Origin: Squalus acanthias
Taxonomy: Eukaryota
DNA length: 64,000 nucleotides
Direction of reading: 5' to 3'
Assembly: GCA_030390025.1 (NCBI GenBank)
Contig: CM059430.1
Location: forward strand, 75,268,001-75,332,000
In this document: piece after piece, positions 3,294-49,870 of the stretch
Layout of the letters: every line of letters starts with the position of its first letter
How positions within the stretch are numbered: the stretch's first letter is position 1
Position numbers and translations under genes: made by a program
The notes under the pieces: model-generated
The model's input: only the letters and a program-made list of their open reading frames with translations
Databases searched by the model: none
Told to the model about the DNA's origin: nothing

Positions 3294-3348
3294 ACGCTCA
3301 GCGTGAAGTATTTCATTCTCCGGCGCTTCAACCTTCAGCCAGTTCACG
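3294..3348 (+). other. Candidate degenerate leader exon of gene A
   Basis: Reads ACG-LSVKYFILRRFNLQPVH-G|gtctgt, a phase-1 donor compatible with the V exon. It starts with ACG rather than ATG, has RR in the hydrophobic core, and has a weak donor. Confidence 0.25.
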
Positions 3349-3596
3349 GTCTGTCGCTCCGAGTGATCAATTGGTTCAGAATGTTGGCGAGTGCTGTACT
3401 TCAGTGCCTCTCTGTTCTGGGGATCATGTTCACCGGTACCTGTTGTTTCTATACCTTGCTTTCTAGCTAAAACGTGGAGTTTCTTAACTTCCATTTGATA
3501 CAACATGTTTTATTGTCCTTTGCACACATTGCCTGACTCGCGCTTTTTCTCCTCTAATATTCTCATTAATTCAGTTTTGATTTTCTTTTCTGACAG

Positions 3597-3917
3597 ACTC
3601 CTGCGAAGCTTCGGTCAAAGTGACTCAGCTCCCTGAAAGCGCGAACATAAACACGGGTACAAGCGTTTCCTTTCATTGTTCGATTCCGTTCTTTCAGGAC
3701 GGACCACGGGTGAAGGTGTACTGGTGGAAACAGGGTGATAATAAATATCTAAGCACAGGACCTGATGACAAAAAAGTAACTGGCTCCAAAACGAAATTCA
3801 GCGGCTTCCTTCAGATAATCAATTTGAGTGTACAAGACTCGGGAGTATATTATTGCACTGTCGCCCTTCGAGGCAGAATAGTTGGAAACGGAACTGGATC
3901 CAATTTAGCTGTCTGGG
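3597..3917 (+). CDS. Gene A exon: Ig V-set domain with germline-joined J-like G strand
   Basis: Acceptor ttttcttttctgacag|, phase 1. Encodes DSCEASVKVTQLPES..VSFHC..VYWWKQ..LQIINLSVQDSGVYYC..GNGTGSNLAVW. Donor G|gtaagt. Canonical Cys-Trp-Cys and DxGxYxC. Confidence 0.95.
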
Positions 3918-4891
3918 GTAAGTATTATTGAAGCGGCGAATGAGATCCATTGACTATTATTTCACACTGCGAAGCAATTTTCTATTGTGCTTTGCAGGAT
4001 TCACAATGCAACTTAAATTCCGGTCGTTTTATGTGTATATATTCAAATTGCACTGTTGACTGCTTCACGTTACATGCTAATTTGTATTACAATATTTCAG
4101 CAATATTAATCAAGAGAATCATTATCGGTTTCATCCAAAGTACACAGTAAGCATGTATACAGCAAGTATTTGAAGTTAAAATTGCAGTGTCCGTTAAGGA
4201 TGTGTATAATGGATGGGAGCGGGAATCCGCCACTGTATGCACCGATCTTACCCTATTTGATGGTTTATTTTTTTCTGCGTTGGTTACGGAGGGCTGGCTA
4301 TTTGTATTGGGATTCAGATTCGCACATTTATAATTTAATGGTCTATATCTTAAGAAAGCCAAAATGCTAACTGTTAATGTCCGCACTCTGTAGCTTGAAC
4401 CTCGGACCCCTTATTTTAATCATCATTGCAGCCTCCAGCAAATACGGTTTCACACGGACCTCCGTACCATAGCCCCTCTATCTTGGGTAAATTATACTTC
4501 CTCATCAGATGTTATGCTCAACGGTATGGAATTTGTCCGCAGCCGTACCGCAAAACAAGCGACAGTGAATCGGCAGCCCGATATACACCACACTCGATGT
4601 GCTTTCCCATTAGAAAAGAAAATCAGTCGAGCTGTAAAAAGGGTGGCCTATTCGCTGTCATCCGGTTTTCGTCCCGCGAAAGCAGTTTAAATTACCGCCG
4701 ATATAAAGTTGAAATGTATGAAGAAGACATTTACGATGTTGGTACCAATAGCGCACAGTGAATACCAGGCCCTCACTACCACCTCCACCCACAACGCCCA
4801 CGTTGTGCTGTTAGGAATGGGCTGAAAGAAAATGTTGTGTTGATAATCTTGAATAATGTCCAAGTAACGTTCTTTTCTTCCATTTTTCTAG

Positions 4892-5200
4892 TTCCGCCAA
4901 CTCCACTGAAAATTGTCTCTCAGGAACATAAAAAGGATTCACCTGCGTCTCTGACTGTACTGTGCACAACATCTCCCTTTTACCCGCAGAATATCAGCTT
5001 CACTTGGTATAAGGATGGAACCAAAATTACAACAAGGATAAATAACATTAATCAACACAACACTGATGGACTATATGAAGCTTCCAGCCGGTTGGAAGAG
5101 ACGCAGGCTGTCCAGACTGGGACCGTTTATACCTGCCTGGTGTCTCACATTACACTCAAAATTTCAGCAACGGCCACTCACATTGTCACGTACCCTACAG
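4892..5200 (+). CDS. Gene A exon: Ig C1-set domain
   Basis: Acceptor catttttctag|. Encodes PPTPLKI..LTVLCTTSPFYPQNISFTWYKDG..DGLYEASSRL..YTCLVSH. FYP, W, GxY and YxCxVxH are C1 signatures. Donor G|gtagga; 309 nt, phase 1-1. Confidence 0.95.
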
Positions 5201-5214
5201 GTAGGATTTCAGAT

Positions 5215-6645
5215 AGAATCTTTGAATCTTACAGCCAAGAAAGAGACCATTATGCCCGACGTGCCTTGGGAGGGTTCTTTGAAAGAGCTGTCCAATTTAA
5301 TCCCCCACACCAGCTTTTTCCCCATAACTCTGCAAATTAGTCCTCTTCCAGTATTTGTCCAATTGCCTTTTGAAAGTTCCTACGAAAACTGTTCCCACCA
5401 ACCTTTCTGTTAATGCTTTCTGAATCCTAACAACACTTCGTGAGAAATTAATTCCCCTCAATTCGCCTCTAGTTTTTAACCAATAATTTTAAATCTATGA
5501 CTGATTGTTCCTGACCCATTTTCCAGAGGAAACAGTTTCTCCCTCCTAGTTCCATCAAAATCTCTCATTTTTTTGAATTCCTCTATTACGTATCCCCTTA
5601 ATCTTCTCTGCTCCCTTGAGAATAATCCCACTTTCTCCAATCTCTCTGCATAGCTGCAGGCTCTCATCTCTGTTATCATCCTGGTAAACCTCCTCTGTAC
5701 CCTTTCCAAGAACTTGATATCCTTCCTAAATTGTGGTGCACAGGATTGGACACAGAACTCCAGCTGAGGACTAGCCAGTGATTTGTAAAGGTTTCGCATG
5801 ACTTCCTTGTTTTTCAATTCACTGCCTCTATTTACAAAGTTCATTATTCCATGTACTTAATTAGCCATCTTATCATCTTGCCCTTCCACCTGCAAAGATT
5901 TGTGAATATGCACCCCAGGTTCCCCTGCCACTGTAAGCCCCTCAAAATATTACTATTTCAATTACACTGCCTCTCCATTTTGTTTCACCCATGTGCACAC
6001 TTCACATGCCCGCGTTAAATTGATCCTGACATGTGTCTGCCCGTGTCACCACTCTATCTATGTCCTGCTGAAGTCTTCTACTATGCTCCTCACTATTTAC
6101 TACGTTGCCAAGTTTTCCATCTTCTGCAAACTTCGAAATTGTACTCGCTGTATCCAACTCCTAGTAATATAGGCATACCAAGTAAGGCATTGGTCCTAAT
6201 ATCTATCCATGGGGGTCCCCCAACACATAATTCTCGGCAGTCAGAAAAGGCATTCTTTCACCACTACACTCTGCCACCTTTCAATGAACCAATTACGTAC
6301 CCAGGATACCACCATCCCTAAAACCCTATGTGCTTCCACTTGCCGAATAAGTCTATTATGAGTTAACTTTTCTAACGTTTTTAAATCTTTTTAAATCTTT
6401 TTAAAGTCCATATATATTCTGAACGACCTTCATCAATCCTCTCTGTTATTTCGTCAAAGAACTCAATCTGGTTAATCAGACATGATATATCTTTAACAAA
6501 TCCATGTTGGCTGTCCCTTATTAAGCCTTGCTTCTCCCAGTGAGTTTTAATGTTGTCCTTACCGAGGGTCTCCAGTAATTTTCTAATTAACGTTAGATTA
6601 ACTAGACTGTAGTTAACTGGTTTATCTATCTCAATTATCGTGCAA
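5215..6645 (-). mobile_element. Degenerate CR1 LINE 3' half (RT), intronic
   Basis: Minus ORFs 5476..5844 (LERVQRRFTRMI..LFSREQRRLRG) and 6381..6668 (SQHGFVK..CLINQIEFFDEIT). Confidence 0.85.
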
Positions 6646-7326
6646 GTAAACGGTTTGCTGTGATCCATCCCCCTATCATTTGTTTACTTTTTCTCAGATA
6701 CAATTATCCGCGGCATTCTGCCAGGTATTGTGCTCCATGGTCTCTGCAACAGCTGTTCGACATCTTCTGCCACAATGGAAGTCACGGTCGTGGTGTGGAA
6801 CTGAAGTGTGGGACAGTATCCCGCAGTAACTCGCACCCTGTGGTTCCATGTCGCAACATGTCGGAGCTGGACCGCTAGCTCCTGCATACCTTAAATCGTG
6901 CTGTAATGTTCAGCAAGCTCTAAATTTAGCAACTTCAATTAGCCGACTTATAAAACAGTAAACTAAACATGATCGCACGGAAGCCAGTGGAAATAAAAAT
7001 GGGGAGAAATGTAAATCAATCTGCCGACTGGCTATCGCCCATTTTACAGTAACGCACGATGTAAGAATTACCCCCTGATATCCCAGTCTTATTTCAACAA
7101 GAAACAAGGAAACAATCACATTTGAGATTAAGACAGGTTAACTTAAAATAACGATTCTTTAAGCATGAAAAATTAACAAAGACCAACACTTATATTATGT
7201 TTCATAAAATTGTAACTTCTTAAAAGAAAATTAAAATATTTTAATGTTTCTGATCTTTTTGGTCATGGTCTTATTGAATTGAACAGTGTAGGGCTTCATA
7301 TTGATATATTTAATTAAAACTTGTAG

Positions 7327-7437
7327 GTGGTGAGATCATCCATTACTTGCTGATTTCTGCAAGTGCAGGGGGCGGGCTGGTAGTCTTGCTGCTGGCTCTC
7401 ATCATTGGGAAGCAATGTGTCTCAAAGGAAAACATAG
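7327..7437 (+). CDS. Gene A exon: transmembrane segment
   Basis: ttgtag|..|gtaaga, 111 nt, phase 1-1. Encodes GGEIIHYLLISASAGGGLVVLLLALIIGKQCVSKENI, homologous to gene B TM exon (YLLI..GG..L.II.GK). Confidence 0.9.
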
Positions 7438-8069
7438 GTAAGAAATAAATTAGACTTTTTACTAAAGTAAGATCAACGTTCAAACAGAGTGTGAGCGAGA
7501 ACTTCCTGTTATATGTCGAGAGAAAGTTAGTTGATTGCAACTGAACGGTTCAAAGAACAGTTACTCTGTCTCACAGGAACAGGGGCGGTTGCTGAACGTA
7601 ACATTGTATCCTGGGTTTTAAGCTGTATGGGACGCTATACAGTCACCCCTATCTGCTTCATTTACACAAATTGCAGCACCTGATGTATTGGATATTGGTT
7701 TCATCACTACCGCTGTAGTGGTAGATTCGAATTTCTAAAATGTTTTGGAATTTTCCGAGGGCCCACAGCCACCGGCGGACTGGCACTCCGCTTTATTGAA
7801 AAATATTGTTCACTGTGTTCGAGTTTAAGCCCATTCCGGACAATGAACCTAGAATTGTGGGTAGTGCCCCCGTGATTTTCCAATCAGTATACCGTCGCGT
7901 GCAATGCCTCGCCGGCAACTGAAAATGTAATTGTCAAAAATAAGTCGGAAACCAAGCAATACGTTAAAATGTGATAGCTAGATCATGTTCTACTTTAAAT
8001 TGAATCTACCGAAGTTTCTTTCCAGGCTGAGTAAATGCCTCATTTTAAAGTCTTGAACTTCATTACCAG

Positions 8070-8113
8070 GAGAACAGAACGATGGCGAAAGATCCGACTA
8101 TCGCGAACAGCCG
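8070..8113 (+). CDS. Gene A exon: short cytoplasmic exon
   Basis: cattaccag|..|gtatgt, 44 nt, phase 1-0. Encodes GEQNDGERSDYREQP. Gene B has a 44-nt exon of the same phase at 28946-28989. Confidence 0.75.
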
Positions 8114-8414
8114 GTATGTGTGCATGATTCATTTTAATGTAACTCAGGTGTAAAAATATACATAACAGTTATAATCTATTTAAAGCAATCATATTTCACG
8201 TTATAATCTATTGCTCTAAAGATTCATAGAAAAATAGCGCAGAGTGAATTCAGCACTTATGCAGCACACACATGGAAACGATCTTCGTCAGTAGGTCAGA
8301 GGCAGCTGAATTGTAACTGTCATCTGTTGATTGTGAATAAACATATTATTTAAATTTACCATCAACTTTAATTAATAGTGAATAACTGCTTTTGCTTCCT
8401 GGATACAGCGGACA

Positions 8415-8805
8415 GTATGTTGGCGGCAGTCCATAAAGCTGTGCCGAATAACTAACTCTGGACTTAATCTAGTGTACGTGAGTTCAAATCCTATCATTGT
8501 AGCTGGAGATTTTGAATTCAGTTTTTTTAAAACCTGTAAATAAAAAATGTTAGCTGCAGAAGTGACCATGAAGCTGTGGGATTGTCTTAAAACCACAACT
8601 GGTTCACTAACGCCCGTCAGGGAATGAAACCTGCCATTCCTACCCGGTCTGCACTGTATGTGACTCCAGTCTACACCAAGGTGGTTGAATCTTAAATGCC
8701 TCCTGAAGGCTCCTCTGAAGGCCAGCACTACCACTTTCTGAGGCAAACCAGGGATGGGCAAAAAAGCCGGCCTTGCCCGCGATGCCCACATCTCTAGAAT
8801 TAATA
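8415..8805 (+). mobile_element. tRNA-derived SINE with LINE-derived 3' tail
   Basis: B-box-like gagttcaaatcc (~8480). The 3' tail cactaccactttct..ggcaa..gccggccttgcc..cccacatc matches the 3' end of the LINE at 50990-51680. Confidence 0.7.
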
Positions 8806-9420
8806 TAAAACCAAGCACAATGATACAGGCTGGCGGTGCCAGTTTAATGATTTGTTGTTCCCGCGCCTGCCCAGAGCACAGAAACTGAATTTTGGGTGAA
8901 TTTGCGGAAATGTTAAGAACACAACGAGGCAGGTGACGATCAATCGGCATTCCCTTCAGTCGCCTCGTTCTCCCGTCATATTATCTAACTGAATTTACTA
9001 CACCTCTAATGTCAACGCCCAACCTCCACCTCCTTGGGCGGAATTTGCTGCTTCACCGCACAGGCCGTGAGACCAAGCAAGCATGGATAAACTTATCGGA
9101 AGATTGAGGGTTATTTGCCCGCCATCTACCACATATTGAAATGAATAGACAAAAACGAGTTGGCATTAACTATAGATTTTCCAATATATATATCGCCTGT
9201 TGCATGTGATCAACGATCCCGGGAAGGAACCCGAGTATTCCAGCCCATCAAGAGACTTATTCGAAACATATCTGATTTTGTCAGTGTATATGATTTTCCT
9301 GATATCTGTTCGACATTGGTTTTCCATTTGTATCCCTAGTTCTAATTCTTCTCCGTGATTGAGTCATCAGGGTTTAATTAACGTGAAAGAGAGATGGACA
9401 TTGATGTAGAAAGAATCATA

Positions 9421-9447
9421 AATATATATATATATATATATATATAG
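9421..9447. repeat. (TA)n microsatellite
   Basis: Direct reading. Confidence 0.9.
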
Positions 9448-10545
9448 ACATATATTATACATAGTTATAGATAAAGAAATAGATATTATGACATTGTAGA
9501 TGAATTGAAAGCTGAACATAAAATTCTAGTCCTGGAGATCAATGAGAAGCTTTAATAATATCTCTTGTTCCATGTTCTGATCCTTGATTCCAGAATTCTA
9601 TTTGCTGTTTACTTGTCTTAACAGCGAAAGTGAGCTGACTACTGTTAACCCCAGACCCCTTTCTGTCTCCCTGTGCTAATTCAATTCGAACCATTGTATA
9701 ACAATGACACATATTTCCCTATTATGTCTAAAGCTCGATTTTATAATGACTCTAAATGATTTTATTATGTTTTGCTGCAACGAAAGTGTAACTTCAACTA
9801 TGGAAACCGTGCCAGATTGAGGTTATTTTAACGAGACGACTCCTATCAATGGACTTCAGGGATGAACTTTGATCCCTTATTGTTCTTTATTTTCCTGACC
9901 TGTAAATTTCGCGTGATTTCCGTAACTTCGGCGGGATGCCAGTGGAAGTTCCAGACAAACGAGGTATAGGACGCTTTCAGCCTATTACAACGTTCCTATG
10001 GGGCTTCTGGTGGTCATCCAGCGAAGTGAGATCAGGAGACTGGTTGTAGATCCGCGGATTTGAGGGGGTTGATTTTAGTATTTAGCGTCTGAGCGTTAAG
10101 CAATGCATGGCGGAGCGCAGAAAGGGAAATCTTGTGGGGAGGATCGCTCGTCCCGAGGGAATTTTTTGCATTCGTTTCAATGGTAGGAAACTGCACGGGT
10201 TCTGTTGCCAGCAGCAGCTCCGCAAAATTTTCTAATCCATGCTCAGCCCTGACGATGCCTCAGGTCCAGGGGGTAAAGAGGAAAGCTCCTTACACCCTAC
10301 TCAAATTATCGAATATTTGTGATAATGCGACTGATTCCGCCTGCTGGGCACTGACGGCGCAGGCACGGAGCACAAACAAGGAGGTTGTGGCAGCCGTGTT
10401 TGATATTCCACCCATTCTTTTAATGGATGGACCTTGGACCTGCGGTTTTCGGGCCTGCTCACATCGTTCTGCGCAGGGAGCGCCCAAACGTGGTATCTGT
10501 CCTAAGAGCATAACAAGATATATTTTTACCGTTCCTTCCATGCAG

Positions 10546-10644
10546 GGAGCAGCCGATGTGATGGCGCCTTATGCCGCACTAGATCTGACCAAATCCCGGA
10601 AAGATCCAAGACCAACGCATAAAGAGAGGACAGTGTATGCCCAG
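10546..10644 (+). CDS. Gene A exon: cytoplasmic, tyrosine motifs APYAAL and TVYAQ
   Basis: ttccttccatgcag|..CAG|gtttgg, 99 nt, phase 0-0. Encodes GAADVMAPYAALDLTKSRKDPRPTHKERTVYAQ. Confidence 0.85.
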
Positions 10645-10857
10645 GTTTGGCTGGGGAGCAGAACAAAGAGACACAGATTACCTGCAATTAACGGGCATGC
10701 GGGGTAGTGTAAGAAATACCTTGATAGTACTTTAGTAATCTTTTATATTTAATGCTAATTCTGCGAGGATCCAGCTATTCCAAGGAATATGCTAAACATT
10801 ATTTTGTAAATAACTACAATATCGAAGTAATGATATTTCCAAACATTGATTTCACAG

Positions 10858-11073
10858 ACCAAGCAAAGGGCGCCGGATAATAAGCTGACCTACGCTGCTG
10901 TAGACATGACAGGCTCCAAGAAAACAACAAAGCCTAATTTTAAGGATAAGAGCACGGAGTATGCTCAGCTACAGATGAAAAATCAAACAGCAGACGTTAT
11001 TTACACGGAAAGAAAAGCCAAGTTATATTGGCGTCCAATGCAGAACCCGTTTTATTTGTGTATAACTAACTAG
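10858..11073 (+). CDS. Gene A last coding exon: ITIM LTYAAV and ITSM-like TEYAQL
   Basis: gatttcacag|, phase 0. Encodes TKQRAPDNKLTYAAVDMTGSKKTTKPNFKDKSTEYAQLQMKNQTADVIY..CITN*. Confidence 0.85.
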   Translation, partial: TKQRAPDNKLTYAAVDMTGSKKTTKPNFKDKSTEYAQLQMKNQTADVIYTERKAKLYWRPMQNPFYLCITN

Positions 11074-11699
11074 ATGCTCATTAACCTAACATCAATAACT
11101 GGCAAAATGATTGCAACTATTCTAAGGGGAATGGTGGGGAGCATCAGGTTAGAAATAGTTAGCAACTAACGCCCAGCATGGATTAAAAGCGGCGCTCCTG
11201 TCTTTCTGCCCCATTGGCCTTATTTTCGCAGCTGCGGATGAAATAGAGTGTAAAAACACACTGACATGACGCCCAAGCTTTGCTCTAACAGGTCCCAGCC
11301 GTCCAAGGCCAGACATCCGATTCGTGTTCGCACTTTTATTTGATAGTTGCTGTTTTGTACTGCTTGAATTCTGTGCAGCTTTGGAAATGTTTGGATTTGG
11401 CGCAGTTTCCAGATTGGCAGATAAATACTGAATCACAACACCGTGATCGCACAAGTATCAGTAACTTGAGTTATTTGAAAATTAATAGGAACGTACATTT
11501 AATCTTCATGGGGTATAAATTCGTCTTGAGCGGGAGCACAAAATGGGCGCTAGAGAATAGACAACTGGCTTACACTCGATTTTCCTTTATATTGAAGTCA
11601 TGGGGTTTGGATTGGCTGCAAGGAGCAAAATTAATCTCAGTGAACAGGGAATGAGTTGGATGAAAGTAATAATGAAACTGCATGTATATATGCCTTTCT

Positions 11700-24241: not shown

Positions 24242-24553
24242 TTGCTCCCGCTACCGTGTTCCAAACCCCTGAAAGCACCAGTGTGATGGCAGGTGTAGAC
24301 ATTACGTTCCATTGCATGACGAGCTCTCTCCAGGGTAATGCAGATGTAAATGTCCATTGGTGGAGACTTGGTGACAATCACTTTATACAACCAGGTTCTG
24401 ACGGCAGAAAACTATTCTTTCCTTTGAAAGACGGAGAGACATCCTTCCAGATCCTAAGTGTCCGTGTCCCAGACTCCGGGCACTATTACTGCGGAGTGAG
24501 ATACACAGGAAACACAATCGTAAATGGAACGGGATCGAAACTTGTTGTGCACG
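24242..24553 (+). CDS. Gene B exon: Ig V-set domain with germline-joined J-like G strand
   Basis: atattttacag|, phase 1. Encodes APATVFQTPES..ITFHC..VHWWRLG..FQILSVRVPDSGHYYC..IVNGTGSKLVVH. Donor G|gtaagc. Confidence 0.95.
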
Positions 24554-24709
24554 GTAAGCGACCTTGGAGAGAGTTGCGGCCGCTCCAATTGTACAACGGT
24601 GTATATATAGTTTCATTCGTTTTTTGATTATTTAGTGAATTGACCTCTACTGCTAGTTTATGGGAGATGATCAGGGAACATTATTTAAAATAAGCCCCAA
24701 AACCATATC

Positions 24710-24711
<2 letters not shown>

Positions 24712-24747
<36 letters not shown>
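24712..24747. repeat. (TA)n microsatellite
   Basis: Direct reading. Confidence 0.9.
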
Positions 24748-24749
<2 letters not shown>

Positions 24750-25429
24750 TTTAATATCTCTTGACTCAGGGGCAATATACAGAAGAAGGATCTAAAGCCA
24801 AAGGTTCTGAAGCCAAAGGCGCAGTATGTGGTATGTTGTAGCATTAAGGACCTTGATTGACTGGCTGTGGATAGAGAAGAAATTAGTTTGTACAAGATAT
24901 TGGTAGGACCACACTTTGAATCCTGTGTGCAAATCCATCACAAAACTACAATGGAAATACGCAAGCAGTGGACGCAGTATAGAACCGGAACAGCCAAATT
25001 GGAAACTCGCTAAGGAACCTGAGTCGCCATGAGACGTTCAGGAGCCTGGGCTTGTTTACTTTGAGGCGCAGAAGGCGCATTGGAAATTTTATTCAAGATT
25101 ATTAATATAATAGATAGTTAGCTCCAGATTGCTACAAAAACAGCAAGAAGTTGACAGCTTTTCAGAGAGAATGTCGGCAGGAAATGTAGATTTAATTGCT
25201 TTCCGCTGAAGGTAATTAACATGTGAAAGGACTCTCCAGTGGAGAGATTACGTGGAAAAACTTAAAGGAGAACTGGATCGAATTTGAGGGAGTGGAAGAC
25301 TCAGTGCTATTTGATTTTGGGAATTGACAGATGGACTACAGAGTATTTTCGGATGCTGCATTTACTGTGTAGTTATTCCTATGCATTCTAAAACTTTTGT
25401 CACAATGAAGTCCACTGCCTCTAATTTTA

Positions 25430-26060
25430 TAGAACCTTATAGCACAGAAAGAGACCATTCGTCCCATTTTGCCTGTGCCAGCTCTTTGAAAGTGCTATCT
25501 AATTAGTCCTATTCCCCCGCTCTTTCCCCAAAGCCCTGCAAAACTTTCTCTTTCAAATATATATCGAAATTCCCATTTGAAAGTTACGACTGAATCTGCA
25601 TCCACCAGCCTTTCAGGAAGGGCAATCCAAATCATAGAAACTCGCTGTGTAAAAATCGATTCTCCACATCTCGCATCTGGTCCTTTTGCCAATTGTCTTC
25701 AATCTGTGCGCTCCTGCTAGTGGAAACAGTTTATGTGTATATAGTATATCAAAGCCCCTCATCATATTGCACAGCTAAATACATCTCTGCTTAACTTTCC
25801 CTACTCTAAGCTGAACAATACCAGTTTCTCCTGTCTCTCCATGCAAATGAAGTCCCACGTCCCTGCTAGTATTCTCGTAAATCTATTCTGCATCCTCTCC
25901 ATGGCCTTGACATCCTTCCTAAAGAATTGTGCCCAGAATGGACACAATACTGCAGATGAGGCCTAACCAGTGATGTATATACTTTTAACAAAACATCCTT
26001 GCTTTTGTACTCTATGTCTCTGTTTTAAAGCCATGGATATCATATGCTTGTTCTGCCACC
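25430..26060 (-). mobile_element. CR1 LINE 3' fragment
   Basis: Tail tagaaccttatagcacagaaagagaccattcg and minus ORF FTQRVSMIWIALPERLVDA. Confidence 0.75.
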
Positions 26061-26609
26061 TTCAAATATTATGGTGTTCAATTACACAACTGATCTGTAT
26101 GTAAAATCCTACCGGTTTGAACTCAAGTCACTGAGCTGTAACTGTAAAAATACTGACACTAATTACTGCAAGGTATGACATACGATTTCGCTGTCCGGCG
26201 AGAGATTTGTACATACATCGTTTCATATTTAGAGAACGGGGACGGAGCGTATACAATCTTTGAACATTTGAATAAACTGCTGGTCAGTTTCAATTTGGTC
26301 TAAGGGACCCTTTGATCATTTTTGCAAGCTAGATTTGATACTAACTGGGAATTATACTGCATGAGTGTCGAACCCAATCTGTGGAATCTCACGCGCTTCT
26401 CCGTATTGGGATCGCTTCTCTGGACGGTAATAATTCCCCCCTTTGTTCCAATTTACAAATCTTAAAGCAATTTGTTCGAAATAAGTTCTGCCTATTTATT
26501 TAAACCTGCCGAAAAGGAAAACAGAGCAAAAAGCTGCTGAGTGAAATTATAAAAATAATTATTTGCCTGGACTAAGCGGAAAGCGGCAACAGCCTGAATA
26601 TCTAATACG

Positions 26610-26795
26610 ATAGCAAAATACTGCGGATGCTGGAAATCCAAAATAACAACAGAAAAGGCTGAAAAAACTCAGCAGGCCAGGCAGCATCCGTGGAGAGAGA
26701 AACAGAAGGACTTCGACCTGAAACTTTAACTCTATTTCTCTCTCCACGGATGCTGCCTGACCTGCTGAGTTTTTCCAGCGTTTTCTGTTGTTAGC
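26610..26795. repeat. Fold-back repeat derived from Penelope-like terminal sequence
   Basis: ctcagcagg.caggcagcatccgtggagagagaaa ... tttctctctccacggatgctgcctgacctgctgag are inverted arms; same unit as the ends of 16790-18550. Confidence 0.75.
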
Positions 26796-27019
26796 CTGAA
26801 TGTCTAGTCGCACTGAATTGCTTTCTCCTCTTCTTGAAAAACGCTTATACATCATCCGCATGTTAGTCTAGAATGTTTTGGGAAGAATCTTATTTCGAAT
26901 TGTTAAATAAGCAAAATGCGAATTGGAATCATCGTATCATATTCAGGAAGATTGGACTCCAAACACTAATCAAATAGCAGAGTCTATTCAATCAGTGTAT
27001 TCTTTACTCTATTCAAAAG

Positions 27020-27328
27020 CTTCCCCAGAACCCGTGAGACTGGTCCCCAAAGTATCCGGAACCAACTCATCTGCTCTAACACTTGTGTGTGAAACGGCCG
27101 AGTTCTACCCGGAGGCTGTCACCTTCACTTGGTATAAAAATGACACCAACATTGTGACTGGGATCAACACCATTAAAAAGCTGAATTCGGAGGGAATGTG
27201 TGAAGCTTCCAGCATATTGCAAACGACACAGCCAGCCCAGAGCGGGGCTGTATATATCTGTGTGGTGTCTCACCTCACACTGCAGAGTCCAGCCGTGGCT
27301 GTTTATTTTGATTCCAGTTCTAACCCAG
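27020..27328 (+). CDS. Gene B exon: Ig C1-set domain
   Basis: attcaaaag|..|gtaaga, 309 nt (same length as gene A). Encodes ASPEPV..LTLVCETAEFYPEAVTFTWYKN..EGMCEASSIL..YICVVSH. Confidence 0.95.
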
Positions 27329-27803
27329 GTAAGATGTTGACATTTGTATAATACTGGCAGCCACTGAGCACTTTAAATCAGCTTTATTTGCTCTCTATCC
27401 GTTTTGTTTCAGAGATGCAATTAATTTTACAGAATGTTCTTTCAAACATTGCTTCTATTTGCTGATTTGTGAAACGGATACAAAAGGCAAGCTTCTCCCA
27501 TCCGAGAAATGGAGTGTAATCTATACAAATTATAATGATCAACTGAATTACACTAATCTTCACCAGATTCAATTGCTCGCCATTTAACAGGGAGAGAAAA
27601 TTCGTAGAATATCTTTTTCTCATTTATTTAATATTTTCCGTTAGTAAGAAGCTGCCGATCCAGACCAGTTCCTGTGATCGCTGTCCCACTTTCCGTGAGA
27701 TGCCACCCGAGAATGAATAATACGGCTGTAAAATGCGCTATAGTCTTCTTAGCTAAAAAGTTCATTATTGTGGTGTAAAAGAAAATTCAAATTAATTTTT
27801 AAT

Positions 27804-27972
27804 NNNNNNNNNNNNNNNNNNNNNNNNNNNNNNNNNNNNNNNNNNNNNNNNNNNNNNNNNNNNNNNNNNNNNNNNNNNNNNNNNNNNNNNNNNNNNNNNN
27901 NNNNNNNNNNNNNNNNNNNNNNNNNNNNNNNNNNNNNNNNNNNNNNNNNNNNNNNNNNNNNNNNNNNNNNNN
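27804..27972. other. Assembly gap
   Basis: Run of N. Confidence 1.
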
Positions 27973-27974
27973 GT

Positions 27975-28150
27975 ATCGATCTATCGTCTATCTATCTATC
28001 TGTCTATCTATCTATCTCTGTCTATCTCTCTATCTATCTATCTATTCTCTCTCTATCTATCTATCTCTCTATCTCTATTGCTCTCTCTCTCTCTATGTAT
28101 AGATCTATCTATCTATCTGTCTATCTATCTATCTGTCTATCTATCTGTCT
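27975..28150. repeat. (TCTA)n/(TC)n compound microsatellite
   Basis: Direct reading. Confidence 0.9.
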
Positions 28151-28367
28151 TTATGTATAAATATAGATTTTAACCAGTTTGCACAGTTAACATTCTCAGT
28201 CCTCGGCTCCGCTGTGGCGAAACTCAAAATGTAAATGGGAGAACTAACATATGTTCAACAGACTGGTTGTATAACACTGCCGACAAAGAAGATCTGGTCA
28301 TTGATTATTACTATTATTAGTCAAAGCAATATTAGGATGATAATTTGTATTGTGATTATGATTTTAG

Positions 28368-28481
28368 GCAATAGACTCCCATCCCTTTACCTACTGATTG
28401 CTGGATGCACAGGGGGTGCAATTATATTTCTAGCCATCATCATCTTGATTGGGAAGAGTTACCAACTCATTAACTGTAAAG
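28368..28481 (+). CDS. Gene B exon: transmembrane segment (GC donor)
   Basis: gattttag|, encodes GNRLPSLYLLIAGCTGGAIIFLAIIILIGKSYQLINCK. The donor position homologous to gene A is AAAG|gcaagg; read-through gives GKEPPM* at 28501. Confidence 0.85.
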
Positions 28482-28945
28482 GCAAGGAGCCACCTATGTA
28501 GTTTCACTGTGATAGATTTGTAATAAAAAAAGGGATCTACAGGACGCCGTGAAAAGGAAGGAACGTTATATCTGGTCCAGGAATGGAATTATGCTGATAT
28601 GTTGAAATGTTATAATTGGTTACATAGTCTGAAAATAAATGTCAAAGCATCATTCAAATTAATTAAAGTAAATGATTAATGAGTACCGAATATTTGCATT
28701 TTTCGGTGGTGTTTTGCTGTTTTGAATCAGTGATTCCCTGTGTTATGGGCCGAAGGCATTTCAGGAACGTTAACTCTAGATTGCTCAACAAAAGGGGCGA
28801 GAGGGGAGTGTTGCGATTACATTTTCAAAACTTGTCATGAGCTGTGATCCTTAAGGCGCTTTTGGCTGAGACTAAGTCGGATTTCCTTGTTCTCGGTTGT
28901 TCACTTCTTGGTGTCTGGCCAAAGTTAAATGTTGTATTTCACTAG

Positions 28946-31921: not shown

Positions 31922-34900
31922 AGAAACATAGAAGATAGGAGCAGGAGTAGGCCATTCGGCCCCTCGAGCCTTTTCCGCCATTTAATGAGATGATGGCTGA
32001 TCATCCAAATTCATTACCCTCTCCCTGCTTTCTCCCCATATCCCTTGATCCCTTAAGCGTTAAGAAATATATCTAACTCCTTCTTGAATATATTTAATGA
32101 ATTGGCCTCAACTGCCTTGTGTGGTAGAGAATTCCACAGGTTCACCACTCTCTGGGTGAAGAAATTCCTCCTCATTTCAGTCCTAAATGGCTTACCCCAT
32201 ACCCTTAGACTGTGACCCTTGGTTCTGGACTCCCCGCCATCGGGAACATCCTTCCTGCATCTAGTCTGTCCAGTCCTGTTAGAATTTTATAAGTTTCAAT
32301 GAGATCCCCTCTCATTTTTCTAAACAATAGCGAATATAAACCTAATCTACCCAATCGCTCCTCATAAGTCATTCCTGCCATGCCAGGTATCAGTCTAGTG
32401 AATCTTCTCTGCACTCTCTCCATGGCAAAAACATCCTTCCTCCGATAAGGTGACCAAACTGCACACAATACACAAGGTATGGTCTCACCAAGGCCTGTAC
32501 AACGGATTGCTCCTGTACTCGAATCCTCTCGCTATGAAGGCCGACATACCATTTGCCTTCTTAACTGCCTGCTGCACTTGCATGCTTACCTTCAGCGACT
32601 GGTGCACGAGGACAGCCAGGTCTCGTTGCACTTCCCCTTTTCCCAATCTGTTTCCGTTCAGATAATAACCTGTCTTCCTGTTTTTGCCACCAAAGTGATA
32701 ACCTCACATTTATCCACATTATACTGCATTTGCCATGCATCTGCCCAATCACCCAACCTGTCCAAATCATACTGGAGTTTCTCTGCATCCTCCTCACAGC
32801 ACCAACGCCCACCCAGCTTTGTGTCGTTTGCAAACTTGGAGATATTACATCTAGTTCCCTCGTCTAGATCTTGTATATATATTGTGAATAGCTGGTGTCC
32901 TCGCACCGATCCCTGCGGTAACCCACTGGTCACTGCCTGCCACTCGGAAAAAGACGCGTTTATTCCAACTCTTTGCTTCCTGTCTGCCAACCAGTTCTCT
33001 ATCCAAGACAGTAATTTACCCCCAAAATCGTGTGCTTTAACTTTGCACGCTAATCTCTTATGCGGGACCTTATCGAAAGCCTTCTGAAAGTCCAAATACA
33101 CCACATCCACTGGTTCTCCCTTATCTATGCTACCAGTTACATCCTCAAAAAATTCCAGTAGATTAGTCAAGCATGATTTACCTTTTGTAAATCCATGTTG
33201 ACTTTGTCCGATCCTGTCACTGTTTTTCCAAGTGCTCTGCTATTACATCTTTTAGAATGGACACTGGCATTTTCCCCACTACCGATGTCAGAATTACCGG
33301 TCTATAATTCCCCGTTTTCTCTCTACCACCTTTTTTAAATATTGGGGTTACAATAGCTATCCTGCAATCCATCGGAACTGTTCCAGAGTGAATAGAATTT
33401 TGGAAAATGACCAGCAACGCATCTACTATTTCTAGGGCCACTTCCTTAAGTACCCAAGGATGTACATTATCAGGCCCTGGGGATTTATCGGCATTCAATC
33501 CCATCAATTACCTAACACCATTTCCCTACAAATACTGATTTCATTCAATTCCTCCTTCTCAATAGACCCTATGGTCCCCGACATCTAGGGAGGTTATTTG
33601 TGTTCTCCTTTGTGAAGACAGAACCAAAGTATTTATTTAATTGGTCTGCTATTTCTTTGTTCCCGATTATAAAATCCCCTGATTCTGACTGCAAGGGACC
33701 AACACTTGAAGTAATGAATCTTTTTCTCTTCACACATCTATTGAAGCTTTTACAGTCAGTTTTTATGTTCCCTGCAAGCTTACTCTTACAATCTATTTTC
33801 CCCCTCTTAATTAATCCCTTTGTCCTCCTTTGCTGAATCCTAAACTGCTCCCAATCCTCAGGTTTGCTGCTTTTTCTGGCCAAATTATATGTTCTCTCCT
33901 TCGATTTTATGCTCTCCTTAATTTCCCTTGTTATCCACGGTTGAGTCACCTTATTGTTTTAGTTTTATGCCAATCAGGGATGAACAAATTATGCAGTTCA
34001 TCCATGCGCTCTTTAAATGTTTGCCTTTGCCTATCCACCGTCAATCCTTTAAGTAACGTTCCCCAATCCATCCTAGACAACTCGTGCTTCATACCATCGT
34101 AGATTCCTTTATTTAAATTCAGGACCCTAGTCTCTGAGTCAACTACCTCAATCTCCATGTTAATGAAGAATTCTAGCATATTATGATCTCTCCTCCCAAG
34201 GGGCCTCAAACAACAAGATTGCTAATTAATCCTTTCTCATTACATAATACCCAGTCTAAGTTGGCCTGATCTCTAGTTGGTTCCTCGACATATTGATCCA
34301 GGAAACCATCTCGCATTCACTCTTGGAATTCCTCCTCCACAGCATTGTTACTAATTTTGTTAGCCCAATCTAAATGTAGATTAAAGTAACCCATGATAAC
34401 TGCTGTGCCCTCATTGCACGCATCTCTAATTTCCCGTTTAATGCCATCCCCAGCCTCAGCATTATTGTTTGGTGGTCTGTATACAACTCCCACTAACGTT
34501 TTCTGCCCCTTGGTAATTCTCAGCTCTGCCCATACAGATTCCACATCACCAGAGCGAATATCCTTCCTTACTACTGTGTTAATCTCTTCTTTTACCATCA
34601 ATGCTATCCCACCTACTTTCCTTTTTTCCTGTCCTTCCTGAATATTGAATACCGCTGGATGTTGAAATCCCAGGCTTGGTCATCCTGGAGCCATGTCTCC
34701 ATAATCCCAATTATATCATGTCCGTTTACATCTATTTGCGCAGCTAATTCATCCACCTTATTACGAATATTCCTCACATTAAGTCACAAAGCCTTCAGGC
34801 TTGCTTTTTTAACCCTCTTTGTCCTTTTAGAATTATTATTTACTGTGGCCCTGTTTTATTTACATCCTTGATTTCTCTGAATCCACTTTTGCTTTTCTCC

Positions 34901-46241: not shown

Positions 46242-47440
46242 TTAGCTAAGTCTGGCCATGATGAGGTGAATCCTGACCTCACGGGCAGCAATGCGTTTGG
46301 TTACTGGTGGCATTGGTGGCGCCGGCTGATCAAGGTCTTCCTCATAGACGTCCTCAAACTCCTCCTCCTCCTCCAAAGAGGCTGTGCACTCTGCGCGTTC
46401 TTCAGCATGCAGCCCAAGCCTCGCTGCTTCGCTATATTGTGCAGGGTGCAGCAGACCCCAATGATTCTGGAGACCCTGGCTGGTGCCGATTGCAGGGCAC
46501 CTCCAGATCTGTTCAGGCATCTGAAACGCATTTTAAACAACACAATCGTCTGCTCTATGACACTTCTGATGGAGATCAGGCTTTGATTGTAATGTTCCTC
46601 GAGTTCATTTGTTGTCCTCCTCAAAGGTGTAATGAGCCACGTCTTTAATGGATTGCCCTTGTCTCCAAGCAGCCAGCCAGAAAGACTGTTTGGAGGTCCG
46701 AACAGCTGAGGAGCGGCGGAGTGGCGCCGTATGTAGGAGTCATGGAAGCTCCCAGGGAACTTGGTGCATAAATGGAGAATGATCTTCCTATGGTTGCAGA
46801 CCAGCTGCACATTGAGGGAGTGGAAGCCCTTGCGGTTAATAAACACTGCTGGGTTATGATGGGGTGCCCTGATGGTCACATGTGTGCAGTCGATTACGCA
46901 TTGCACCCGTGGGAATCCAGCCAGAGCTGTAAAGCCAACCGAGCGCTCAGCAGCACTGGCTTCATCAGTTGCAAAGTTTATATAATTTACTGCCTTGTCA
47001 AATAGGTCATCAGAGATGCCGCAACTGTCTTCTGTAGAGGCGTGAAAGGAGCCTGAGGCGAAGAATTTGAGGGCAAGGGTGACTTTCACAGATATTGGTA
47101 AGGGGTGACCCCCCGCTCCTCTGGGCTGCAGCTCTTGCTCCAGCAATCTGTAAATGTCCACCACATCCTGGCGTGTTAGCGTAAGCCTCCATTGGCACTG
47201 CTGGTCAGTCATGATGTGGAACCTCATCCTCTGCCTTTAAACCCTGTGCTGGGTGTAGCACCTCCGCCGAAGTCCAGCCCTACGCTGCTGCCTTCTGACC
47301 TGTGCAGCTTGAGGTTGTTGAGGCGAAGGCTGGGCTCTTGCTGTTTTTGTGGCTGCTGGGGTGTCTGGTTCTGCTGGTGTTGGAGCTCTTCGTGGTGAGA
47401 TTCTGAGGACCAAGCTGAGAGAGTGTAAACTGTACCCATT
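46242..47440 (-). pseudogene. Harbinger (HARBI1-family) DDE transposase, degenerate
   Basis: ORF 46301..47227: [72 protein letters not shown]- and C-termini lie in other frames; apparent deletion after CGIS. Confidence 0.92.
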
Positions 47441-47637
47441 CTGATGTAATGGACGGCAGGTGACAGAGAGATGACAGAAGCAACAATGCGAATGCCGAGA
47501 GAGGTTGTTCCAATGAGGTGGAACTGGATGGAGAGCTGGCTCCAAACACTTGCAAGCTGCACAAGGCTGTATATGTCTTCTAAATGCAGTAACCAACAGT
47601 TTCTGAGCTCTGAAAGTGAAAAACTGCAATATGGCAA

Positions 47638-49870
47638 TATATTCCACTGAAAAGAAAAGGGTGTAAAAGAAAGGACAGTCATCCGTGGCTAAGTAAAGAA
47701 ATTAAGAATAGTATTCGACTAAAAACAAGGGCATATAAGGTAGCGAAATCTAGTGGGAGGACAGAGGATTGGGAAAACTTTAAAAGGCAGCAAAAAATAA
47801 CAAAAAGATTGATTAAGAAAGGGAAGATAGATTATGAAAGTAAATTAGCAAAAAATATAAAAACAGATAGTAAGAGTTTTTATAGTTATATAAAAAGAAA
47901 AAGGGTGGCTAAAGTAAATGTTGGTCCCTTAGAGGATGAGACCGGGAAATTAATGGTGGGAAATATGGAGATGGCAAAAACACTGAATGAATATTTTGTA
48001 TCAGTCTTTACAGTAGAGGACACTAAGAATATCCCAACACTGGACAAACAGGGGGCTATAGTGGGAGAGGAGCTAAGCACGATCAAAATCACTAAGGAAG
48101 TGGTACTCGGTAAAATAATGGGACTCAAGGCGGATAAATCACCTGGACCTGATGGCTTACATCCTAGAGTCTTGAAGGAAGTGGCGGTAGGGATTGTAGA
48201 TGCATTGGTAATAATTTTTCAAAACTCCCTGGATTCCGCTAAGGTCCCGGCAGACTGGAAAACTGCTAATGTAACACCCTTATTTAAAAAGGGCAGTAGA
48301 CAGAAGGCTGGTAACTATAGACCGGTTAGCCTAACATCTGTGGTAGGTAAAATTTTGGAGTCCATTATTAAGGAAACAGTAACAGGACATTTGGATAATC
48401 ATAATTTAATAGGACAAAGTCAGCATGGTTTTACGAAGGGGAAGTCATGTTTGACAAATTTGCTGGAGTTCTTTGAGGAAGTAACATATAGAGTGGATAA
48501 AGGGGAACCAGTGGACGTAGTGTATTTAGACTTCCAAAAGGCATTTGACAAGGTGCCACACAAAAGATTATTGCTTAAGGTAAAAAATCACGGGATTGGG
48601 GGTAATATTCTGGCATGGATAGAGGATTGGCTATCTAACAGAAAGCAACGAGTTGGGATAAATGGTTCATTCTCAGACTGGCAATCAGTAACTAGTGGTG
48701 TTCCACAGGGGTCAGTGCTGGGTCCCCAACTCTTTACAATCTATATTAACGATTTGGAGGAAGGGACTAAGTGTAACATATCAAAATTTGCAGATGATAC
48801 TAAGATGGGAGGGAAAGTAGTGAGTGAGGAGGACATAAAAAACCTGCAAGGGGACATAGACAGGCTAAGTAAGTGGGCAGAGATTTGGCAGATGGAATAC
48901 AACACTGGAAAGTGTGAGGTGATGCACTTTGGCAGGAAAAATCCTAGAGCAATTTATTATCTTAATGGCAAGAAACTGGAGAGTACTGAAGTGCAAAGGG
49001 ATCTGGGGGTCCTGGTGCACGAAACTCAAAAGTTTAGTATGCAGGTGCAGCAAGTGATTAAGAAGGCAAATGGAATGTTGGCTTTCATTGCTAGGGGGAT
49101 AGAATGTAAAAATAGGGAGGTATTGCTTCAGTTGTACAAGGTAGTGGTGAGACCGCACCTGGAATACTGCATACAGTTTTGGTGTCCTTACTTAAGGAAA
49201 GACATCCTTGCTCTCGAGGCAGTGCAAAAAAGGTTCACACGGTTAATCCCGGGGATGAGGGGGTGGTCATGTGAGGAGAGGTTGGGTAGATTGGGACTTT
49301 ACTCATTGGAGTTCAGAAGAATGAGAGGCGATCTTATTGAAACATATAAGATTGTGAAGGGGTTGGATCGGGTGGATGCGGGGAGGATGTTCCCGATGAC
49401 GGGTGAGACTAGAACTAGGGGACATAGTCTTAGAATAAGGGGCTGCTCTTTCAAAACTGAGATGAGGAGGAACTACTTCACTCAGAGGGTGGTAGGTCCA
49501 TGGAATAAGCTGCCACACAAAGCTGTAGAAGCTACATCATTAAATAAATTTAAAACAGAAATAGACAGTTTCCTAGAAGTAAAGGGCATTAAGGGTTACG
49601 GGGAGCGGGCAGGAATTTGGACATGAGTCTAGGTTCGGATCGGTCATGGCCCTGTGGGTAGTGGAGCGGGCCCAGGGACCGTGTAGCCTGATTCTGCTCC
49701 TATTTCGTGTGTCCAATTCTGTTAGATGCAGGAGATGGTTCTGTGATAGTAGATAGTAGATTGGCGGTTAGGATCAGATCAGCCATGATATTATTGAATG
49801 GCGGAGCAGGCTCGAGGGGCCGATTGGCCTACTCCTGCTCCTATTTCTTATGTTCTTATGTTCTTATGTT
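47638..49870 (+). mobile_element. Young 5'-truncated CR1 LINE nested in the Harbinger element
   Basis: Frame open from 47641 (IPLKRKG..HPWLSKEI) to 49626, followed by 3'UTR and a (ttcttatg)n tail. Confidence 0.95.
47809..49626 (+). CDS. CR1 ORF2 reverse transcriptase (lacks the endonuclease N-terminus)
   Basis: 605 aa with KSPGPDG, NYRPVSLTS, QHGF, LDFQKAFDKVPH, GVPQGSVLGP, FADD. No stops or frameshifts. Confidence 0.93.
   Translation: MIKKGKIDYESKLAKNIKTDSKSFYSYIKRKRVAKVNVGPLEDETGKLMVGNMEMAKTLNEYFVSVFTVEDTKNIPTLDKQGAIVGEELSTIKITKEVVLGKIMGLKADKSPGPDGLHPRVLKEVAVGIVDALVIIFQNSLDSAKVPADWKTANVTPLFKKGSRQKAGNYRPVSLTSVVGKILESIIKETVTGHLDNHNLIGQSQHGFTKGKSCLTNLLEFFEEVTYRVDKGEPVDVVYLDFQKAFDKVPHKRLLLKVKNHGIGGNILAWIEDWLSNRKQRVGINGSFSDWQSVTSGVPQGSVLGPQLFTIYINDLEEGTKCNISKFADDTKMGGKVVSEEDIKNLQGDIDRLSKWAEIWQMEYNTGKCEVMHFGRKNPRAIYYLNGKKLESTEVQRDLGVLVHETQKFSMQVQQVIKKANGMLAFIARGIECKNREVLLQLYKVVVRPHLEYCIQFWCPYLRKDILALEAVQKRFTRLIPGMRGWSCEERLGRLGLYSLEFRRMRGDLIETYKIVKGLDRVDAGRMFPMTGETRTRGHSLRIRGCSFKTEMRRNYFTQRVVGPWNKLPHKAVEATSLNKFKTEIDSFLEVKGIKGYGERAGIWT

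Follow-up and report, generated by a model that had tools for sequence, protein, structure and literature searches.

Does a stretch of the Squalus acanthias genome in which an antigen-receptor-like ectodomain seems joined to the tail of an inhibitory receptor hold a real gene, and where would such a gene belong among the known receptors? The stretch, hereafter the window, comprises 64,000 nucleotides of contig CM059430.1 (assembly GCA_030390025.1, positions 75,268,001 to 75,332,000 of the forward strand), and coordinates below count from its first letter. An initial annotation, made from the letters alone, had described in it a non-rearranging receptor with one V domain, one C1 domain and a tail with four tyrosines like that of SIRP-alpha. 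We report here that this gene, gene 1, is one ordinary, intact member of a large family, and that it is likely to be the inhibitory form in a paired-receptor family of cartilaginous fish that is the closest shark counterpart of SIRP.

Gene 1 is an intact, germline-joined V(J)-C1 gene

Reading of positions 3300-11400, together with exon-by-exon translation, resolved seven coding exons that form an intact gene (Table 1), with a coding length that adds up to 1155 nt. The six introns all start with GT and end with AG, and their phases are, in order, 1, 1, 1, 1, 0 and 0. The initial annotation had proposed five of these exons, which stand with their AG/GT sites and compatible phases, but had listed neither the leader exon nor the cytoplasmic mini-exon. 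The leader product shows 83% identity, across 18 residues, with the start of the Heterodontus protein XP_067905935.1 (P0151), and the mini-exon is required because the transmembrane (TM) exon is in phase 1 whereas the first tail exon is in phase 0. Each exon was handled singly in our comparisons, and full-length comparisons were made through database proteins (P0151, P0173 from Heptranchias perlo, and others). The exons match other cartilaginous-fish proteins in the same order and with 62-90% identity, which argues that gene 1 is real rather than a product of chance. Its reading frame extends 16 codons (LYWRPMQNPFYLCITN, 11026-11073) beyond the end (...ERKAK) of P0173, and the stop codon has moved in one of the two lineages.

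Table 1. Features of the window, with their positions and strands.
Feature	Position	Strand	Remarks
Gene 1, leader (signal peptide) exon	3381..3435	+	ATG at 3381; MLASAVLQCLSVLGIMFT, 18 codons plus 1 base; donor GT at 3436
Gene 1, V-set exon including J-like G strand	3597..3917	+	321 nt; phase 1/1; Pfam V-set
Gene 1, single C1-set exon	4892..5200	+	309 nt; phase 1/1; Pfam C1-set
Gene 1, stalk, uncharged TM and juxtamembrane exon	7327..7437	+	111 nt; phase 1/1
Gene 1, cytoplasmic mini-exon EQNDGERSDYREQP	8070..8113	+	44 nt; turns phase 1 into phase 0
Gene 1, tail exon 1 (cyt1)	10546..10644	+	99 nt; phase 0/0; Y1 and Y2
Gene 1, tail exon 2 (cyt2)	10858..11073	+	Y3 and Y4; stop TAG at 11071-11073
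Gene 2, tandem paralogue	24244..28489	+	V ~24244-24549, C1 ~27025-27306, TM ~28388-28489; Pfam V-set and C1-set
Reverse transcriptase fragment	32661-33239	-	
DDE_Tnp_4 (Harbinger/PIF-type) transposase open reading frame, open	46304-47236	-	311 aa; E 2.6e-31
Long interspersed nuclear element (LINE) reverse transcriptase open reading frame, open	47620-49623	+	668 aa; RVT_1 E 4.1e-31; adjoins the transposase reading frame

Gene 1 is a germline-joined, non-rearranging type I membrane receptor consisting of signal peptide, V(J) domain, one C1 domain, Cys-free stalk, uncharged TM segment and tail. The ectodomain layout given in the initial annotation, a V exon with its own J-like G strand and no recombination signal sequence (RSS), followed by a single true C1 domain and an uncharged TM segment, was borne out in full. 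The V exon matches Pfam V-set (E 4.3e-10) and contains the motif D-S-G-V-Y-Y-C. It ends in GNGTGSNLAVW, which fits the pattern G-x-G-S-x-L-x-V and is directly followed by the GT donor; the family consensus of this J-like motif is GNGTGSxLxV, and in the alignment the stretch NGTGSNLAV pairs with FKSGAGTELSV of SIRP-alpha. The N-G-T that opens the motif (3887-3895) is also an N-glycosylation sequon, and one may speculate that a glycan at this site might stand in the way of V-V pairing, which in immunoglobulin (Ig) and T-cell receptor (TCR) chains is supported by the FGxG bulge.

The next exon matches Pfam C1-set with an E value of 3.6e-14, versus 0.032 for C2-set_2. Hatherley 2009 (PMC2785349) lists three hallmarks of C1-set domains, and gene 1 shows them all. 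FYP opens its BC loop, exactly 13 residues separate the B-strand Cys from the C-strand Trp, and CLVSH, of the pattern C-x-V-x-H, runs from the F-strand Cys; C24, F29, W38, C81, V83 and H85 of the domain are invariant across 30 family sequences. This is the one C1 exon between the V and TM exons, versus two C1 domains in SIRP, and tblastn retrieved no second C1 exon in gene 1. The ectodomain exons encode two intradomain Cys pairs and one further Cys near the N-terminus, the stalk is devoid of Cys, and the TM segment, YLLISASAGGGLVVLLLALIIG, has no charged residue.

We scanned the whole window for RSS heptamer/nonamer pairs with spacers of 11-13 or 22-24 bp and compared the result with shuffled sequences. 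The scan produced nine weak matches, versus 5.55 expected in shuffles, and none of them lies in or beside the V exon of either gene 1 or its tandem paralogue, gene 2.

The tail resembles that of SIRP-alpha beyond its tyrosines

The tail holds four tyrosines, in the contexts APYAAL (Y1), TVYAQ|T (Y2, spanning the exon junction), LTYAAV (Y3) and TEYAQL (Y4). They are spaced Y1-22-Y2, 14, Y3-23-Y4, each pair residing in its own exon. By the consensus of the immunoreceptor tyrosine-based inhibitory motif (ITIM) and of the corresponding switch motif (ITSM), LTYAAV is the sole canonical ITIM of this tail, and TEYAQL is ITSM-like.

The spacing of 22/14/23 in gene 1 compares with 24/18/28 in a SIRP-alpha-like protein of bichir; counted from the end of the TM segment, the tyrosines lie at about 32/54/68/91 in the family versus 31/55/73/101 in the bichir protein. 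In local alignments, cyt2 matched the tail of an echidna SIRP-alpha-like protein with a z score of 5.8, and none of 500 shuffles scored as high. This likeness reaches past the tyrosines, following the pattern R-x-x-D...L-x-Y-A-x-x-D-M...K-D-x-S...E-Y-A. Likewise, cyt2 matched the bichir tail with a z score of 3.8 (0 of 500 shuffles). Taken alone, cyt1 was not significantly similar to the echidna and bichir tails (z 1.5-1.6; 53 and 38 of 500 shuffles as high).

Gene 1 belongs to a large family found in cartilaginous fish

When the C1 exon was compared with a set of 1.84 billion representative proteins, 680 of them matched at E<=1e-3, and 207 at E<=1e-10. Among the 150 matches listed there are dozens of proteins of 200-400 aa with 40-68% identity and a single match at about residues 120-225, corresponding to a V-C1-TM-tail layout. 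The relatives at 40-78% identity whose source was looked up were all chondrichthyan, as were the 51 matches (of 51) in a search from the Heterodontus homologue P0151. The family is spread over some 20 species, which comprise sharks, rays and one chimaera, and, as far as found, appears restricted to cartilaginous fish.

P0151 (388 aa) matches six of the seven exons of gene 1 in the same order with 61-83% identity (V 67%, TM 63%), and has between TM and tail a stretch similar to the mini-exon, although without a BLAST match. The Heptranchias protein P0173 is 78% identical to gene 1 in C1, 66% in TM, 62% in the mini-exon (13 residues), 90% in cyt1 (30 residues) and 80% in cyt2 (55 residues). With respect to these nearest relatives, the tail is thus better conserved than the ectodomain (90% and 80% for cyt1 and cyt2 and 78% for C1, all to P0173; 67% for V, to P0151). 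The public model of P0173 has no V domain, and starts with SSIFLVPPTPL, which matches the translated intron just 5' of the C1 exon (window ~4877-4909); its 5' end looks mis-annotated.

As a working set we took the 128 proteins whose C1 domain scored at least 70 bits against a family hidden Markov model (HMM). A single C1 domain is present in 126 of them. Thirty-three have no TM segment, and are partial or secreted models. Another 48 combine a plain TM segment with a tail no shorter than 60 aa and two or more ITIM/ITSM-like motifs; a Y..Y pair 20-25 residues apart occurs in 46 of these, and the full four-tyrosine pattern in 24. In 18 of the 128 the TM core includes a charged residue, a single Arg in 14 of them, and the tails of 15 of these 18 are shorter than 60 aa (e.g. 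P0007 and P0011). This composition, inhibitory forms plus forms with an Arg in the TM segment and a short tail, points to a family of paired receptors. Both genes found in the window have a plain TM segment, and no member with a charged one was seen within its 64 kb.

The cartilaginous-fish family that the initial annotation had proposed is borne out, with 128 proteins in our set, from about 20 species, but its suggestion that the family may be undescribed was overstated. The proteins are already in public sets under inconsistent automatic names. The NCBI name is mostly 'tyrosine-protein phosphatase non-receptor type substrate 1-like', that is, SIRP-alpha-like; others are 'SIRP beta-1-like', 'immunoglobulin lambda-1 light chain-like', 'tapasin-related protein-like', 'NCR3LG1-like', 'CD276 homolog' and MHC class II beta-like. 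No published description of a shark SIRP-like or VJ-C1-ITIM family was found in the literature, in a search that did not extend to subscription journals, the PRARP paper or supplements (e.g. those of PMC12227049 and PMC10751288).

The top summed matches to the C1 exon were proteins of white shark, stingray and manta (P0001, P0004 and P0012) of 900-2200 aa with up to 15 C1-set matches, named 'titin-like' or 'uncharacterized'. Their C1 domains fall with UrIg2-like and Ig rows in the tree described below, and they could be genuine multi-C1 proteins or result from the merging of tandem genes.

The C1 tree places the family, with weak support, beside SIRP

We built a careful tree of C1 domains (68 rows, 101 columns, LG+C20+F+G4) from a set that did not include lambda constant, TCR or PRARP domains, and a quick tree of V domains with 42 rows. 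The groups submitted to approximately unbiased (AU) tests, for both C1 and V, were named after the trees had been seen. In the C1 tree the family forms one clade (99/99). Its sister group, of 12 rows and with a support of 76/77, contains B7-H6, the first C1 domain of bird, hedgehog and echidna SIRPs and eight lungfish SIRP C1 domains, and the next node out adds the remaining SIRP C1 domains (67/21). Holding the family together with SIRP gave a C1 tree 8.7 log-likelihood units (lnL) better than a quick free tree of the same domain, and was not rejected (p-AU 0.63). Conversely, a tree that united it with the IgNAR, IgM, teleost kappa-like, UrIg2-like and multi-C1 rows was worse by 62.5 lnL and was rejected (p-AU 0.013). 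For the V domain, a grouping of the family with IgNAR and UrIg2-like sequences cost 6.5 lnL and was disfavoured (p-AU 0.031).

With a profile of the whole family protein against solved structures, SIRP-alpha ranked third and SIRP-gamma tenth among 7505 sequences at E<=1e-10. In SIRP-alpha, V and d2 form one colinear stretch of 67.4 bits, to which d3 adds 46.3 bits; of the separate C1 matches in the three chains with alignments shown, this is the highest. The protein-language-model neighbours of P0151 (Atlas) are two SIRP-alpha clusters (0.97 and 0.96). A search started from a lungfish SIRP retrieved, as its shark matches, members of the family alone (P0221 and P0222), together with bird, hedgehog, echidna and bichir SIRPs and deer B7-H6; a word-seeded search from another lungfish SIRP-like protein retrieved lungfish proteins only (8/8).

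Two further approaches were set aside. Domain HMM scores were tried as a test of SIRP membership and did not discriminate, SIRP, UrIg2-like, B7-H6, IgNAR and multi-C1 domains all scoring 27-57 bits. When single exons were searched against solved structures, multi-domain antibodies dominated the lists and the rank of SIRP was unreadable.

Transcript data for the locus

The initial annotation had proposed to confirm the exon junctions with transcript reads. We compared three small runs labelled Squalus acanthias, of 120-130 M letters, with positions 5076-11075 at a likeness of at least 90%. The runs were listed with 0.00-0.02 of the sampled words, and their status as RNA is a guess. Their contigs cover intronic repeats in this interval. 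One contig of run X1 (190 nt) and one of run X2 (466 nt) match the last part of the C1 exon (5076-5208) at about 92%, with 7 and 11 differences. Their divergence begins at 5208, which is 8 nt beyond the donor; both probably stem from a close paralogue or allele rather than from gene 1, and may be spliced. A third contig, of run X3 (192 nt), matches exactly the intron at 9899-10090, on the minus strand, and the organism is therefore present in the runs. This contig may represent carried-over DNA, or else a transcript that is unspliced or unrelated. In the same region, an (AT)n microsatellite occupies 9420-9447, in the intron that separates tail exon 1 from the mini-exon, and 9408-9487 were masked as repeat in read mapping. 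The runs, in which no contig lies on the TM or tail exons, neither support nor refute transcription of gene 1.

A probable SIRP counterpart, and what speaks for other origins

Like SIRPs, the proteins of this family are type I membrane proteins whose N-terminal V domain has a J-like G strand and precedes a C1-set domain. Their inhibitory form, like that of SIRP, carries four tyrosines in its tail, arranged as two pairs of similar spacing and flanks, and in the tree their C1 domain stands beside that of SIRP. Short-tailed forms in which the TM segment holds a basic residue also occur in the shark family, and both traits are among the features of SIRP-beta given in PMC12975943. Differences are equally clear. 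One C1 domain is found in 126 of 128 members, versus two in SIRP; the J-like motif opens with N-G-T rather than F/S-G-x-G; and the family is a clade of its own (99/99), with V domains that do not group with those of SIRP. Furthermore, its basic TM residue is Arg, whereas that of SIRP-beta is Lys.

Several observations weigh against our reading of gene 1 as a SIRP counterpart. The placement of the C1 domain beside SIRP and B7-H6 is weakly supported (76/77, then 67/21), and the family HMM gives SIRP C1 domains 27-57 bits, no higher than those of UrIg2-like, B7-H6 and IgNAR C1 domains (42-49 bits); nor do SIRP V domains outscore other V domains. The V domain of the family pairs with B7-type V domains instead of SIRP V (split 95), although this pairing joins two long branches (1.17 and 1.07) and may be an artefact, and holding it together with SIRP V costs 6.4 lnL (p-AU 0.10). 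In the separate trees that the initial annotation had called for, C1 weakly sides with SIRP and B7-H6 and V does not side with SIRP, in a data set without TCR, Ig light-chain constant or PRARP rows. Strong nesting of both domains inside SIRP, which it had named as the outcome that would remove the novelty, is not what the trees show, the support being weak for C1 and absent for V. In the profile search the best colinear stretch was that of 2rcj_C, whose residues 7-206 we read as lambda V-J-C (75.3 bits, versus 67.4 for SIRP-alpha). Gene 1 encodes one C1 domain rather than two. As to the tail, the four motifs listed in the initial annotation are all present and SIRP-alpha-like, but APYAAL, with Ala at -2, and TVYAQT are near-misses and not canonical ITIM or ITSM motifs; pairs of an ITIM and an ITSM are common among many unrelated inhibitory receptors of the Ig superfamily (IgSF), and the likeness to SIRP-alpha could be convergent. 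Finally, no contig of the three small runs lies on the TM, mini, cyt1 or cyt2 exons of gene 1 (depth 0).

The match to lambda V-J-C, best of the colinear solved matches, upholds the initial annotation in calling the ectodomain antigen-receptor-like. It also opens the way to a different origin, in which the family would be an independent VJ-C1 lineage from an antigen-receptor or light-chain-like precursor, a relic of the PRARP or UrIg kind whose tail arose by convergence or exon shuffling, and not a relative of SIRP. Like Ig lambda and TCR chains, 126 of the 128 members have one V and one C1 domain, several have been automatically named as lambda-1 light chain-like, and their V domains do not group with SIRP V. 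Unlike those chains, gene 1 has V and J-like strand in one exon, with no RSS found; it has a TM segment and a long signalling tail, and has neither a stalk Cys for an interchain bond nor charged TM residues of the CD3 type. Its tail, in addition, aligns with that of SIRP-alpha past the tyrosines.

UrIg and UrIg2, described in PMC12227049 as non-rearranging antibody-like shark genes, are a parallel found in elasmobranchs and also have a single-exon VJ followed by C1-type domains. UrIg2 was the second best of the 7505 solved sequences, with a total of 126.8 bits from three matched stretches that together span its four domains, and its colinear stretch reached 59.7 bits. However, as described there, UrIg2 has a V-C1-C2-C3 organization and forms disulfide-linked dimers, whereas gene 1 has one C1 domain, a TM segment and an ITIM tail. 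The C1 domain of the family lies on the other side of the tree from UrIg2-like rows, and its V HMM gives the UrIg2-like V domain only 7.2 bits. PRARP is another non-rearranging VJ gene family, seen as a relic of the antigen-receptor precursor (Fu et al. 2019, as cited in the part of PMC10751288 that bears on it) and likened here to our family by that cited description. The same part of PMC10751288 presents PRARP and NKp30 as MHC-linked VJ genes, and PMC11599192, in the section concerned, counts CD79, NITR, SIRP, CD8, NKp30 and PRARP among the IgSF members with a joined VJ. Against descent from this kind of precursor, grouping C1 with Ig, IgNAR, UrIg2-like and multi-C1 rows was rejected (p-AU 0.013, with groups defined post hoc and no lambda constant, TCR or PRARP rows), and grouping V with IgNAR and UrIg2-like rows was disfavoured (p-AU 0.031, groups also post hoc). 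In all, we regard an independent lineage as unlikely. The same tests, together with the position of C1 beside SIRP and B7-H6, do not favour the intermediate place between SIRP/NKp30-type receptors and the ancestor predating the recombination-activating genes (RAG) that the initial annotation had assigned to the family, although, with no lambda constant or TCR rows in the tree, this is not final.

Some members are automatically named NCR3LG1-like, the name of B7-H6, and the family might comprise V-C1 molecules of this type, acting as ligands for an NKp30-like receptor instead of as SIRP-type receptors. The V-C1-TM-tail layout is the same, B7-H6 C1 lies within the sister group of the family, and in the quick tree the family V pairs with B7-type V, over the long branches that make an artefact possible. 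But no B7-H6 chain appears among the best 60 solved sequences, where SIRP-alpha and SIRP-gamma do, the deer B7-H6 sequence does not have a four-tyrosine tail, and B7-H6 is not known to have paired activating and inhibitory forms. The conserved J-like motif G-x-G-S/T-x-L-x-V and the four-tyrosine tail of SIRP type also speak against it, and the partners with Arg in the TM segment and a short tail fit a receptor family. This possibility seems highly improbable.

A further doubt concerns gene 1 itself and not its family, because it could be a silent or decaying copy, a recent unexpressed duplicate that reads as intact. Four of its exons are without any contig in the three runs, its frame is 16 codons longer than the usual end of the Heptranchias homologue, and its surroundings are debris of LINEs and DNA transposons. 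Nevertheless, its seven exons are all open with canonical splice sites, its tail is 80-90% identical to that of a homologue in another shark order, and the runs are tiny, of unstated tissue and not shown to be RNA; we deem a silent copy improbable. Besides descent with SIRP and descent from a light-chain-like precursor, the family may descend from the common stem of both. This would make it a surviving line of a non-rearranging, single-chain V(J)-C1 receptor ancestral both to SIRP-type paired receptors and to light-chain-type chains. We consider this very unlikely; if it were true, the near-equal likeness to lambda and to SIRP-alpha would reflect position and not noise, and signalling through ITIM pairs would predate the RAG invasion.

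Predicted function and significance

Taking gene 1 as the inhibitory form of a SIRP counterpart, recruitment of SHP-1/2, as proposed in the initial annotation, is a reasonable inference from the tail. If the gene is expressed, its V domain would bind a putative ligand, and Src-type kinases would phosphorylate the tail tyrosines. The phosphorylated tandem units Y1-22-Y2 and Y3-23-Y4, with 14 residues between them, could then dock the tandem SH2 domains of SHP-1/SHP-2-type phosphatases, which, by analogy with SIRP-alpha, would damp cell activation. The relatives with an Arg in the TM segment and a short tail may signal in the opposite sense, through a DAP12-like adaptor.

SIRPs have been discussed as relatives of the antigen-receptor precursor on account of their VJ-type V domain joined to C1-set domains (PMC2785349). 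When that paper appeared, all known SIRP genes came from animals with adaptive immunity, and cartilaginous-fish SIRPs are not mentioned in the passages concerned. The family described here would trace this design to the root of the jawed vertebrates, in a version whose lambda-like V-J-C ectodomain contains one C1 domain and whose tail resembles that of SIRP-alpha. Trees of antigen-receptor origin would also gain one non-rearranging VJ-C1 lineage, besides UrIg and PRARP. Within shark immunology, the family indicates a large and rapidly evolving repertoire of receptors, some inhibitory and others activating.

Neighbourhood of gene 1

The window contains two genes of the family plus repeats. In tblastn comparisons, gene 2 (Table 1) is 38% identical to gene 1 in V, 46% in C1 and 38% in TM. 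It belongs to the same family but to a different subclade, with the Pristis protein P0185 as its nearest relative, and its TM segment is uncharged; no tyrosine tail of gene 2 was found by similarity in 28-36 kb. The remaining features of Table 1 are of mobile-element origin and include the open transposase and LINE reverse transcriptase reading frames that adjoin each other on opposite strands.

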